Notes: a model not told the origin generated them from the sequence alone. Counted from the stretch's first letter, positions 41,647-47,600 are shown. The stretch is 64,000 nucleotides of DNA from Oculina patagonica (GCF_052425735.1 NC_135765.1:1736001-1800000); one strand, 5' to 3'. Made by a program: numbers and translations.

Positions 41647-44600
41647 TCACAAAGACGTTTGTGGTGTATGGCAGACAAATGACAGCAGACTCTGTTGTTT
41701 ACTTGTACCTTCACTACCCTCTTTGGTAGCATTGCAGAATCGGAGGACCCCCTGGATGAGGTCAGAGATTTTCCAGCCACGCGAGTATAAGCACACCAGT
41801 GCCTTGAGAAGCTTTGAAACAAAAACCAGACATAGTGTTAGACGGGACAAACTAGCGATGTGTAAAAATGAGCCAAGCAAACATTAGAGAGGTTAAGCAT
41901 GACGTTAACGGCAGACGGCAAACTAACTTCTGATTTTGAGTTCTTTTCCTTTAGTCCGTAAATAATAAAAGCATACAAAAATGGAATAACGTCTCCTAAT
42001 ATTCATTGCAAATACAAATAATTTCACTCTACTGTACACACAACTGAAGAGAGACGGCAAAAGTTTCATTTTTGCCGTTTGCTGTAAACGTAATGCTTAA
42101 CCTCTCTATTATGTAACCGCTGGGAACGCGGGCAAAAGTGGAGCCATGGCAAGGGCGGGAAATTCGTGTAACCGGTGGCAACACGGACGCACATGTTACC
42201 CATGGCCAACGCAAGAAACATGAAACCAGGAGCAAGTGTGGGAAAACATGCAACCAATGGCAAGCGCGGAAAACATGTAACCAATGGAAAGCTCGGGAGA
42301 ATATGTAACCAGTGACAAGGGCAGGAAAACGTGTAACGAGTGGCGAGCGCGGGAAAACTTGTAACCAGTGGTAAGCGGGAAAAAACATGTAATCAGTGAC
42401 AAGCGCGGGAAAACGTGTAACCAGAAGTAAGCGCGGGAAATTATGAAACCAGTTGCAAGCGCGGGAAAACATGAAGCCAAAGGCGGGAAAACGTGTAACC
42501 AGTGGCAAGCGCAAAAAAACGTGAAGCCCGAAGCAGGCGTGCGAAGACATGTTTTGTTGGCAAGCACGAGGAAACATGAAACTTGTGGCAAGCGAGAAGA
42601 AAGTTGCGGAAGCCAAAGCACGAAAACTGGTCTCAGCTTGTTTGGCGAGAAATTACAACCTTGGTTAGAATAACGTAATAACCAGGAAACCCCAAAAAGA
42701 AGATAAAATTCAAAATTCTTTTGGAAACATCGCTAAAAAGAAATTTAGCGGCACAAGGAGAGGTGAAAGGTGAAATTCTAAACTGCGCAAAAAGTAACGA
42801 AATGAAATTAAAAATATATATAATAAAATAATGTGATTTTCAAAGTGGATCTTACCCGTGACATTCTCCGGTCACCAAAGGTATGATAAACTACCACAGG
42901 GCACCCAGCTGCAGAAGCAGCCACCCACTGAATGACAGCCTTGAGTTCCGGGTCCCCCCTGAAAACCCCGCATCCCCAGTTCCCTGTAGCAACGGGGCGC
43001 ACTTGGGGTTCCCCGGTGGGAGCTACCAAAGATGCTTCTGCAATTCTAACCGCTCCACATACTGTCAAAGTACTTAAATGTTCCGCGAATTCATTTAACG
43101 TTTGTTCCTCATTTAACTCCTCATCAGAGAAAGAAGGCGATTCTTCCGTTGTCGTTTTAACAGCTTCAGGCTGTTTTTCTTCCCGAGAGTATCGCTCACC
43201 GTCTTTGGTCGCTTCTTTTGTTCTTGCCTGTATCATTTCTGATACGCGCGTCACTCCATCGAGTACAATTTCTTGGGAAAGCTCCTCCGCCATTTTAAAG
43301 AGAGCTAGTGGAGTTTCAGAGGAGCGAGCGCTTAACGCGCTATCAGAAGACACCTCTTTAACTCCCTTTAAGTCGCTCTGTGCCTCCGGCTCTGAGGATT
43401 CTGACGAGCTTGTTTCACTCTCGTCCTCTGCACTGATGTCCGGTGTGTTACTTCCTGTCTCCTCACTCTGAGTTGAGTGATCACTTTCTCCGTCGTCTGC
43501 TCCTCGCTCCTCTTTGCCATCGACGGTGGATGAAGTAAAATCATGTACTGTTTTTTCAGTACAAACTTCTGCAGCCTCGGCGAGAGCGGATGAAAACGTC
43601 TCCTCTAGAAGTGCATCGACGTGGCCATTGAGAACGCTTGACAATTCCTTGTTGTCCGTGTTCAATTCAGAGCTCTGCAGAGACTTTTTGTCAATATGGC
43701 TTCCGCCATCTGCAATGGAGTCCAATGGTTTCTTTTCATCGACAAAGCAAATCGAAGATCTAATCGCAGAAGCAACAACTGCACTTGACAGTTTTGTAGC
43801 CAACGTTTCAAACAGCTTTGTATCAGAGACGTTAAATTCTTCACTGCTTTCCTTCCCTTTCGCAGCTTCTTGCTCGATTTCGTCAAATTCTTCCAAAAGG
43901 TTTTGTCTAGGGTTAGAAAACTCAGGATCTGCACAATTATCTGTACTATCTTTTGCTGCGCTAAACCTTTCAAGTTTTGCTGAGCTGACTAAAGAGGATA
44001 AATCTTCTACAAACTCGGAAATGTTAAAACCATTTGAAAACCTTTTTCTTGGCGGTGTCTCGGGTTTAGAAACTTTCTGGGTTAAAAAAGAAATAAGACT
44101 ACTGCCATTCTTCACAGGAGAGCTTAATTTCTTGGGGCTCTTCTGAAAAACTTCTTTGGTACCCGCGGCCACGTGTCCGGGCGAGGTAGCCGTGGTTGCT
44201 ATGGCAGTGGCAAGCGATGACGTCAGCTCAATACATGACATCAGAGAATTGGAGAGCGAATCAGCGAAGCTTTTTACAGAAAGCGACAATGCTGCACCTT
44301 TGGCAGGGCTTGAATCTAAACACAGAGAGTTGCGAAATCGATCCGAATCAAACGATGTCTGTTCCAGGTCGAATATGGCGGGGGAGGACGGAGGCGTCCC
44401 GGGAACAAGCGGGGTATTTGAACCACTGATGTTTTGCGCCACGCACTTCGGGAGCGGCGACGGCCTGAGAAGGCTTTCCGAATAAACCCGAGTTTTTTCG
44501 GGCGAACTTCCGAAGACTTCGATTAAGGACTTTTTCATCACATTTGTTAGAACATCCCCGTCCACAAAGTCTTCGAGGATGAAATTATTGTTTGATTTCA

Positions 44601-47600
44601 TTTCATCTAAGGCTTGAGATAACGCAAGATTAACAAGGTTATCGCTGAATTCCTGGATTTTCACGACTGTGAGGTCTTGTGGTAAAGATTGTTCCACATT
44701 ACTTTCAGTTTCCTCCGATGATACCACGAGATTCTCCGACGAGACCACGAGATCTTCCGATGAGGCCACGGAGGACTCTTCACTTTCAACATCTACAAAG
44801 GAAAGAAGAATCAGAATTAAAGACTCGTACAACTGTGGTACAACTGGTTACAGGATCAAAGGGTGCTTAACGTTGACAATTTGTCTCGTACAGGCGATCA
44901 AAGTGGATGGACTGGTTGCATTTATATGGCGGATCTCACAAACCGTTGAGAGGCGAGAATCAGGGTCCTACTTCATGAGGCGCTTGCTGCAAGAAGGAAC
45001 GAGCACGATATTTTCGAGTTGGATTGGGGCCTGGGATTAAAAGCGAGCTAGCTCAGTTCGCGTGTCAGTTCGCGTGTCAGTTCGCTTCTAATCAGGCTAT
45101 CGACAAAAAATAGTTTATTGCAGGGAATGTTAAAGGGGCTAGGTCACGTTGTTTTAGGTAATTCTACTTATTTTCGTTCATTAAGAGCTCTAAACTTCAA
45201 ATTGGCAGAGCAAAAGCCTTTATTGGCAAAATCACGGCTACATAACAAACAAGGATGATTTTCGAGCATTGTAAAACACTTTTTCATACAAGATAAAGTT
45301 GAAAAAAGTCGGGCCGACGTTTTTCAACTTTACCCGTAAGCCATCCGTTTTAATCTTCTCGAATTTTGTCCTTCCATGCCCCTTTTTGGCCTTTTTGTGT
45401 TTCTTTTGAATTCTTCTAGTTTAAGCCGTTATTGTGATATTTCAGTTGATTCTAAGACCAGTTGGTCAGTGCCGAAATTGCCTAAAATTGCATAACAGCT
45501 GCTTTAATTACGCTGTGTAATTTCCCACGCATCTTTGAGTTGCAAAAAAATCTGTGAGGCAGATCGTAGGTAACATCGCTTGAACTTACGCTCCTTGTTG
45601 ACTTTTCGGACATGTAACCCTAACCCTACAGTTACATTTTGTACCATAACAATTCCCACGTTTTTACAACTGCAACTGAAACAGCATCAAACATGTTTCC
45701 AGAAACATTTGTAGCGTGCGGTGTTTCCCCAATGTTTCCTAGTTTGCTTTTGTTTCTAGCGTTATTTTTGTTCGGCCAAGAAGCAAAATTTGCTTCTGCT
45801 ACACGGCAAAAACATTTCGTGTTTCCGCGCGGCATGGGAACATGGCAAAACGAGGAAACAATTAAGGTCGGCACACACTAGGGGACTAGTCCGAGGGACT
45901 TGTCGCAGGAATTTTCTTCGAGGACCAGTCCCCTAGTGTGTACTCGTATTTTGCATCGAAATTCTTGTCGCAGGGACCACATTTTTGGTCCCTGCGACTA
46001 GTCCCACGAATTAAGCTGGTTTGATTTCTGGGACTAGTCGCAGGAACCAATAGTCCCACAAATCGGTCAATTTTCTATTGTGTACACACTAAGGGATAAG
46101 TCCCTGCGACTATTCCCTTCGACTATTATTACCAGAAAGAAATTCATTGGTCCTCTTGAGCAAGTGAGGTGTGGAAATCTCACGCTTGACTTCACTGATG
46201 TTGCTAAATCACTAGGTGTATTAATTGATAATAGACTCACCTGGGATAGTCATATTAAGAAGCTTTCGAAATCCTTTTCCGCCCAACTTAAGATGCTAAA
46301 AAGGATGAAGTACCTCCCGGTAAACCAATTAGAGGATATTTATTTCAAAATGATTCTGCCAAATGTAACGTACTGCATATCAGTTTGGGGTAGTTGTTCA
46401 CATGCCCTTTTTGATGAAATTGAAAACCTGCATATAAAAGCTGCTCGGCAGATACATGATGTTCCCACCACCTATGATGATCACCAAGTTCTAAAACGTG
46501 TTAAATGGCATAACCTGGCCTATATGTATAAGAAGAAGGTGGCACTAGAAATGTTTAAAGTGGTAACTATGGAACACAGACTATCTTCTTATTTTGAGGA
46601 TACCAAATCAAGCAGAAGGGGAAATTCGCTTAGAATGAGACAAATGAACACTGAATTTGGCAAACAATCTTTAATTTTTAGAGGGCCAGTAGTCTGGAAC
46701 AGTCTAAATGAAAATATCAGAAAACCTGTAAATATAAATCAATTTAAAGCTGCCATAAAGAAATGTAAAGCGATGGACAATGTAAGTTTTATTAAAGGAA
46801 CATGTACTAACAATAATAAAAACTTAGAAGATTTTGTGTATTTTTAAACTCTATATTATATTTTTAATTTTATTATGCATGTGTATTTGTATTCTAGGTA
46901 ATTTTTAAATAATCATGTTATGTATATTTCAGTAATGTCATGAAATTTTAAAGAATATAAAGAACTGTATAAGTTATTTTCTATTTTTTATCTGTAATTA
47001 AGTTTTAAAGGTCCACATCAGCCCTAGGCTGCCATCTTTATAGACCTTTGTTTTCAAATAAAGTATGTATGTATGTATGTATGTATGTATGTACTAGTCC
47101 CCTAGTGTGTGCCTACCTTTATGGAAACATGCTTCCAGCATGTTTTCTGGTTTTGCCGGGCCTTAAGCGCACAAAGAATTACGTACCTGAGTGACTTTGG
47201 ATAACTTGAGACCCAACTTCCGGGTTGTAGAATCCAACTAAAGCTTTGTTAAGTTCTCTTAACACAGCTGTTTCCTCGTACTGAGCTTCTCTCGGCATGT
47301 TCTTGAACTGTTTTGCATCAATTGCTACCACCGTGGTGTGAAAATCACCATTTTCATTACGCTATACAAAGAAAAAGAAATGAAATGAAAAAGAAACCTT
47401 GAGTCAAGTTGGAAATCGTTATTGTCCATGTTAATTACCATAAAGTCCTTCAAATGTCAGGTCAGCTTTCATAATGTGCCGGTGATGAAGGCAATACCCT
47501 TTTGTTGATAATTTCTTTATTCTCCTCAACAGACTGCTTTAAAATGTATTAATATTGTAATGAGAAGTCAACAATTGATCACAAACCTGTGATTCGTCCT

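Follow-up and report, generated by a model that had tools for sequence, protein, structure and literature searches.

Why should a gene for poly(ADP-ribose) glycohydrolase (PARG) carry, in the middle of its macro domain, a long acidic insert punctuated by a recurring helix? The question is posed by a locus of the stony coral Oculina patagonica, contained in a 64,000-nucleotide stretch of its genome (GCF_052425735.1, NC_135765.1:1736001-1800000) that we refer to as the window. An initial annotation of the window had described seven spaced amphipathic helices within the insert, had likened them to the helices by which A-kinase anchoring proteins (AKAPs) dock on the dimerization/docking (D/D) domain of protein kinase A (PKA) regulatory subunits, and had proposed a PARG-AKAP hybrid; all seven are present on the minus strand, displaced by only 1-3 nt from where they had been placed. 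The reading that we favor, and to which we assign a probability of roughly 45%, is that the gene encodes a multivalent D/D-domain docking scaffold built into a putatively active PARG, a layout that would correspond to that of the AKAP_110 family with the missing catalytic half still attached.

The gene is a complete PARG. A tblastn search of the window with a full-length ortholog (P0005, 1,077 aa) recovered ten coding exons on the minus strand, from 51756 to about 41647, and all N-terminal PARG exons are present; exon limits obtained in this way are approximate, and the junctions flanking the giant exon that holds the insert were set by RNA contigs. In P0005 and two other orthologs (P0025 and P0049), PARG_cat_C (PF05028; 247-257 bits) and PARG_cat_N (PF20811; 73-84 bits) both exceed the gathering score, and PF05028 is matched as two pieces, with profile positions 2-158 upstream of the insert and 159-205 downstream. 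The second piece is also found in the window, where the last ~50 residues of the giant exon match positions 159-205 (E=3e-17, 63 bits). The insert had been described as acidic and internal to PARG, and it is both: it splits the macro model at 158/159, has a pI of 4.5 with 97 Asp and Glu versus 52 Lys and Arg residues, and is rich in Ser/Thr. The insertion point lies in a surface loop that immediately precedes the ATGNWGCG strand; human PARG has a short loop here (...ENLSAVATGNWG) before ...VATGNWGCG..., compared with ~590 residues in the coral protein.

Canonical PARG (human, PDB 4A0D/4B1G) and the coral protein otherwise share PARG_cat_N and PARG_cat_C, the catalytic signature and the ATGNWGCG strand; the N-terminal regulatory region of vertebrate PARG is not seen in the coral protein. 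The coral C-terminal fragment aligns to human PARG structures with 53 bits (E=3e-13), in an alignment that starts only after the insert. The catalytic signature GGG...QEE is intact in the window and also in three related loci (L001-L003), and judging from these motifs the coral PARG is apparently catalytically intact and putatively active.

Within the insert, the seven helices (H1-H7) are the segments most similar to one another. Numbered from the aromatic residue, they follow the motif [F/Y/M/L]1-[A/S/V]2-x-x-L5-[S/V/L]6-x-x-h9-h10-x-x-[A/G]13-h14-x-x-h17. That a single pattern recurs had been noticed from the sequence alone, and it is borne out when 17-column profile windows of the insert are compared all against all in an unbiased manner (135,981 non-overlapping pairs): the top-scoring pairs are nearly all helix against helix, in most cases with the registers equal or close, no pair scores higher than H4-H7, and the 21 possible helix pairs all fall in the top 2.7% of the background, 17 of them in the top 1%. 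A simpler pattern, A-x-x-L-S-x-x-h-h, occurs five times against 0.21 expected from shuffles, a comparison that must be read in light of the pattern having been derived post hoc from these same helices.

The helices also stand out by conservation, as islands in more rapidly changing linkers, which the initial annotation had anticipated. Across 45 coral orthologs, conservation is 0.78 in the helices and 0.64 in the remaining insert; in six distant homologs, including those of anemone type, helix identity is 34-44% versus 20-33% elsewhere in the insert, with fewer gaps; and in the sea-anemone homolog (Actinia tenebrosa LOC116292090, equivalent to P0129), the corresponding values are 41% and 24%. 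This anemone protein retains six of the seven helices, H3 being the one not retained. To describe the helix surface we used as the D/D face positions 1, 2, 5, 6, 9, 10, 13, 14 and 17, that is, the contact positions together with the position-1 aromatic, following PMC12083921. AKAP helices measure 14-18 residues and carry hydrophobic or small residues along one face. All seven helices fit this register, and the face is preferentially conserved (0.86 versus 0.71 for other helix positions, p=1.8e-6).

Likeness to known anchoring helices is most specific at the start of the motif. Type I AKAP helices begin with [F/Y]-A, a dipeptide that is present in SKIP, AKAP3 and the distal AKAP220 helix and that experiment has shown to be required for smAKAP to bind the type I regulatory subunit (RI); F-A combined with a C-terminal A-F pair likewise gives AKAP79 RI binding (PMC12083921). 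Two helices of the window, H2 and H7, start with F-A, as does H4 in most orthologs, and F-A or Y-A opens H2, H4, H6 and H7 of the anemone homolog; the RI-type dipeptide therefore characterizes a subset of the helices, with H1, H3 and H5 beginning F-S, F-V and H-V, respectively.

We also compared known anchoring peptides with the insert by best ungapped matches, with P estimated against shuffles. For the smAKAP RI-anchoring peptide (sequence from PMC12535202), the three best matches in the insert are H6 (P=0.004), H7 (0.02) and H4 (0.07); for AKAP4 213-235 (sequence from PMC9012431), the best match is H3 (P=0.03), whose core FVEDLSSLV resembles the AKAP4 segment YVNRLSSLV; and for RIAD the top four matches are H7, H1, H4 and H6, none of them individually significant. 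smAKAP (C2orf88, PF15127) is the prototypic RI-specific AKAP, and a crystal structure exists of its complex with the D/D domain of RI-alpha (PMC12083921, citing 5HVZ). The core A-x-x-L-S-Q-[D/E]-I-[L/V]-x-D-[A/G]-[L/V] is common to smAKAP YAHRLSQDILCDAL and coral H6, and in both proteins the helix follows an acidic stretch (Pfam alignment range 17-78); coral H6 starts with M-A where smAKAP has Y-A, and the anemone H6 has Y-A. Only the helix is alike in the two: smAKAP has a single one, in a lipid-anchored vertebrate protein of ~95 residues. The Pfam SmAKAP profile gives sub-threshold matches on H6 or H7 in 26 of the 45 orthologs (best E=8.5e-5), and a weak match falls on H7 in both the window and Actinia. 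In language-model features, the coral and anemone inserts, which are ~30% identical, have clusters of AKAP11 and AKAP4 (PF05716) as their top named neighbors. The insert exon contains only three PKA consensus sites of the form [RK][RK]x[ST], one of them RRMS at the end of the macro strand; they are poorly conserved, and we did not use them as evidence.

The anemone homolog offers a view of what has been retained when the enzyme decays. In P0129 (residues ~250-320 and ~1085-1100), GGN...QQE replaces GGG...QEE and the Tyr-containing segment is lost, and the ATGNWGCG motif is degraded in anemone-type homologs (AIGSWSCG in P0129, ATGSW-FGG in the related P0056); P0129 is thus probably a pseudo-enzyme. 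A more degenerate relative, P0059/P0128, likewise has degraded catalytic motifs and has kept the helices, and it would appear that within Cnidaria the helices outlast catalysis. That a protein without the catalytic residues still carries six of the helices suggests that the helices are the selected function.

Several results weigh against D/D docking and are best considered together with the explanation that survives most strongly beside it, namely that the helices bind or fold for another purpose, be it an unknown partner, self-association or a fold-back on PARG that regulates access to the active site. The AKAP likeness would then reflect a generic helix face of small and hydrophobic residues. 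One-sided conservation is expected of any interface and is equally compatible with helices that pack within the molecule. The hydrophobic moments of the window helices, 0.08-0.33, are ordinary: ranked among all windows of the insert itself, they fall between the 5th and 82nd percentiles, and they lie below those of the smAKAP, AKAP4 and RIAD peptides (0.37-0.50), values that H4 and H6 of the anemone do attain (0.50 and 0.37). The interpretation proposed at the outset is therefore supported in part. H1 does fit the classical type II spacing 1-4-5-8-9-12, as had been pointed out, but the pattern itself is at chance level in the insert, with two matches against 1.06 expected from shuffles. Similarity scores to single known anchoring peptides are modest; the SmAKAP matches reach 11-16 bits in the window and in individually checked orthologs, compared with a cutoff of 27 bits; the Pfam profiles RII_binding_1 and AKAP_110 have no match within the insert; and Atlas scores of 0.62-0.68 are leads only by the tool's own grading and lie in a range that shuffled sequences also reach.

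Other parts of the insert point in the same direction. Non-helix blocks (...LPKC, GTPPSSPA, ...PEKARxYSE... and TKExFQKSP...SPVKNG) are conserved as much as the helices or more, which indicates that the insert has further functions, and H7, with several invariant positions, lies only 17 residues from the macro strand. Structure prediction is of limited help: AlphaFold2 models of the giant exon (45 sequences; mean predicted local distance difference test score, pLDDT, 35) place all seven helices within predicted helices at pLDDT <50, the full-length model of P0005 (34 sequences) has a mean pLDDT of 36.5, and neither contains a helix bundle, at a confidence (pLDDT 35-36) that is uninformative. 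Sequence searches of the PDB with the insert profile and with helix 6 returned chance matches only (ARR1, designed armadillo repeats). Against a purpose other than D/D binding stand the independent R-binding peptides, each of which picks the flagged helices, in register, as its best matches; the F-A/Y-A start, which is a specific published determinant (PMC12083921); and, for what the confidence allows, the missing bundle. On balance we consider such a purpose a serious alternative that is nonetheless somewhat unlikely.

If the helices are docking sites, their relation to the vertebrate AKAPs comes into question. The C-terminal part of the PARG macro domain has a remote homolog at the end of AKAP3, AKAP4, AKAP11 and SPHKAP, and its N-terminal part "appears to have been lost" (PMC11377751, 2024); in the HHsearch source data of that study, the AKAP profile can be aligned with human PARG over 122 columns and with PF05028 over 47. 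In size, the coral piece that follows the insert, made up of PF05028 159-205 and the tail, is close to the PARG-homologous piece in vertebrate AKAPs, and the last exon together with the preceding macro fragment is what corresponds by homology to the AKAP_110 C-terminus. From these piece sizes, though not residue by residue, we infer that the vertebrate homology boundary coincides with the coral insertion point. The AKAP_110 family and the coral protein both have several anchoring helices (predicted ones in the coral) in a long, largely disordered region, followed by a PARG-homologous C-terminus; AKAP220 and SKIP have two helices each, with F-A in those that are RI-selective (PMC12083921). The coral architecture therefore matches the AKAP_110 layout in having a PARG-derived C-terminal fragment preceded by predicted anchoring helices, but unlike that family it keeps the whole PARG N-terminal helical domain and the catalytic core.

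The AKAP_110 profile itself does not distinguish the coral protein from other PARGs. The C-termini of P0005, P0063, P0108 and P0129 match PF05716 at positions 609-666 (E=4e-4 to 2e-3, 16.8-19.3 bits); the 25-bit gathering score is not reached, and only the last ~58 residues match. We considered whether these matches place the coral C-terminus closer to AKAPs than ordinary PARGs are, and rejected this because ordinary PARG fragments carry the same match: PF05716 is found in 25% of the members of one Atlas cluster, which consists of PARG C-terminal fragments of the ordinary kind, mostly from plants.

Granted docking, common descent with the vertebrate AKAPs seems to us to have slightly better than an even chance. 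One may postulate a scenario of convergence, in which D/D binding by the helices is genuine and the region of vertebrate AKAP3/4/11/SPHKAP has an origin independent of the coral insert, the two being disordered regions that each gained anchoring helices beside a PARG fragment. Consistent with this scenario, besides the AKAP_110 matches of ordinary PARGs, is a search of 1.84 billion representatives with a hidden Markov model (HMM) of the insert only, which yielded 17 proteins, the longer ones all with a PARG C-terminus, and recognized no vertebrate AKAP; this search accordingly does not show that the insert is homologous to AKAP_110, nor does it reveal intermediates in bilaterians. When the anemone C-terminus or a 16-sequence profile was used for word-indexed searching, no AKAP was returned either. 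Furthermore, AKAP220 and SKIP originated at the base of vertebrates according to a 2025 evolutionary survey (PMC12083921), and short amphipathic helices evolve easily. Convergence would nevertheless leave it to coincidence, improbably, that what the vertebrate proteins share with PARG (about 100-122 columns) corresponds to the part lying downstream of the insertion point in the coral. Vertebrate genes of the AKAP_110 family encode the disordered, helix-bearing region in one giant exon, and one giant exon is thus common to both families, a further point against independent origins. We regard convergence as clearly improbable.

The insert is also part of the mature transcript. Its reading frame (42808-44832, minus strand) contains no stop over 674 codons, at a G+C content of ~44-46%. 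RNA contigs from three related corals cover 42856-44792 unspliced and show GT-AG joints at 44792/47187 and 41811/42856; unbroken cover and canonical junctions together establish 42856-44792 as the giant exon and place the insert in the messenger RNA. This exon begins in phase 1, and its end falls exactly behind ...FGDRRMSR. Intron-less contigs of 3.4-4.3 kb encode the entire protein in the relatives P0005, P0025 and P0049, and full-length orthologs from intron-less transcript-type contigs measure 1024-1088 aa with the insert kept in frame. The giant-exon protein has 51 homologs at 85-39% identity, and the insert is conserved across Scleractinia and Actiniaria. Directly upstream of PARG, on the same strand, an exon encoding a ZZ-type zinc finger (57030-57671) and one encoding an EF-hand (53732-54478) form one gene (53732-57671), and a neighbor with the EF-hand, or with ZZ and EF-hand, adjoins the orthologous PARG in L001, L002 and L003; this shared neighbor identifies the PARG genes of the window and of the three related loci as orthologs. 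The possibility that the insert is absent from the mature protein, as a retained intron, a gene-model artefact or part of a pseudogene, was considered only because the open reading frame (ORF) interrupts a domain; it found no support and is refuted by the open frame, the spliced contigs, the in-frame orthologous transcripts, the conservation in both orders and the conserved synteny.

One homolog, P0128 (L004), was considered as a PARG-less, "AKAP-only" transcript. We rejected this interpretation: the 2 kb contig does not extend to any upstream exon, its ORF stops at ...EKV, the same point as in homologous giant-exon ORFs, and we read it as a genomic exon. The Atlas neighbors of the insert include a cluster whose proteins are 1,382 aa long and have both PARG_cat_N and PARG_cat_C. 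A phylum is recorded for two of its members, Xenacoelomorpha in each case, a hint that PARGs with an insert occur beyond Cnidaria.

The features of the locus are collected in Table 1.

Table 1 Coordinates of the PARG gene, its insert and the seven candidate docking helices, numbered from the first nucleotide of the window.
Feature	Position	Strand	Basis or remarks
PARG gene	41647-51756	-	tblastn with P0005; RNA contigs; Pfam on full-length orthologs
Ten PARG exons	51756-51352, 49920-49765, 49448-49320, 48845-48651, 48221-48165, 48051-47959, 47676-47587, 47361-47187, 44792-42856, 41811-41647	-	
Two small exons with catalytic signature GGG-X6-8-QEE	47959-48221	-	tblastn; intact, second part QEEIRF
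Giant exon, 1,937 nt: insert and first ~50 residues of C-terminal PARG macro fragment	42856-44792	-	
Acidic, Ser/Thr-rich insert, ~590 residues, between PARG_cat_C positions 158 and 159	43003-44792	-	
Helix 1	44608-44652	-	F-S at positions 1-2; face conservation 0.91 versus 0.68; inside AlphaFold2 helix 27-54
Helix 2	44230-44271	-	F-A; best conserved helix; FADSLAESLMSCV in anemone
Helix 3	43978-44016	-	F-V; core FVEDLSSLV; weakest candidate, moment 0.08, absent from anemone homologs
Helix 4	43762-43806	-	L-A in window, F-A in most orthologs
Helix 5	43582-43626	-	H-V
Helix 6	43252-43296	-	M-A in window, Y-A in anemone
Helix 7	43048-43092	-	F-A, F invariant; 17 residues before PARG strand; face 0.93 versus 0.71
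Return into PARG fold	42856-43002	-	Pfam PARG_cat_C 159-205; aligns to human PARG structures
Last exon, ending ...PQTSL	41647-41811	-	tblastn, RNA contigs

Some further observations concern the sequence in and around the giant exon. The conserved non-helix blocks lie at 44377-44571 and 44080-44229 (minus strand), include an invariant TPPSSP and the segment TKExFQKSPKxLGSPVKNGDSLISFL, and are conserved to anemones; it is possible, if questionable, that TPPSSP represents proline-directed Ser/Thr sites. Where the giant exon starts, 2.9 copies of a 21-bp unit (44711-44770) encode a reiterated acidic heptad, (E)DLVVSS / ENLVVSS. The last PARG intron contains a minisatellite (42111-42551) with a 28-bp unit, also read as 56 or 84 bp, and ~72% matches, which accounts for spurious ORFs of 195 and 141 aa at that place. 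Also intronic is a segment (45092-45479) with very high summed depth, in the thousands, in RNA-library contigs of all four runs and with many partial joints, presumably a high-copy, transcribed interspersed repeat. On the plus strand of the large intron, a 255-aa ORF (46080-46847) looks like the C-terminal part of ORF2 of a non-LTR (long terminal repeat) retrotransposon.

Under the docking-scaffold interpretation, a dimeric D/D (RIIa-fold) domain would be able to dock on each helix. Because of the F-A/Y-A start, we consider the PKA type I regulatory subunit the likeliest partner; other possible partners are the D/D proteins of sperm and cilia ROPN1, SPA17 and CABYR. Such a scaffold would bring the cAMP-dependent kinase to the poly(ADP-ribose) hydrolase, or the reverse. 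The coral gene may, in addition, preserve the ancestral architecture of the AKAP3/AKAP4/AKAP11/SPHKAP family. Taken jointly, these proposals amount to a scenario in which cnidarians keep the ancestral form, an active PARG with RI-type helices gained before the cnidarian-bilaterian split, while anemones represent the first step of decay, with catalysis lost and helices kept, and vertebrates have lost the whole N-terminal half; we offer this scenario tentatively, as one that is possible but has odds well below even.

The fusion had initially been taken to be undescribed, and this requires qualification. The PARG-AKAP connection (PMC11377751, 2024) and the F-A helices (PMC12083921, 2025) are already published; a literature search found no paper on a full PARG with such helices or on any non-vertebrate member, and a catalytically intact PARG with AKAP-like helices appears to be undescribed. 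Public databases list the orthologs only as "uncharacterized protein", among them XP_058961180 (Pocillopora verrucosa), XP_068685872 (Montipora foliosa), XP_068732442 (M. capricornis) and the Actinia LOC116292090.

AKAP11 and SPHKAP are disease-relevant scaffolds, and their PARG-like tail was recognized only in 2024, without an explanation (PMC11377751). The coral gene provides a concrete hypothesis both for the origin of this AKAP family and for the former role of the tail. If the hypothesis is true, the origin of the family and of F-A-type RI anchoring moves from the base of vertebrates to early animals, and a single polypeptide would once have combined PKA anchoring with poly(ADP-ribose) hydrolysis, and would still do so in corals. 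The coral gene also offers a natural system in which a possible physical coupling of cAMP/PKA signaling and ADP-ribose turnover could be examined, with the anemone homolog as its catalytically dead comparison.

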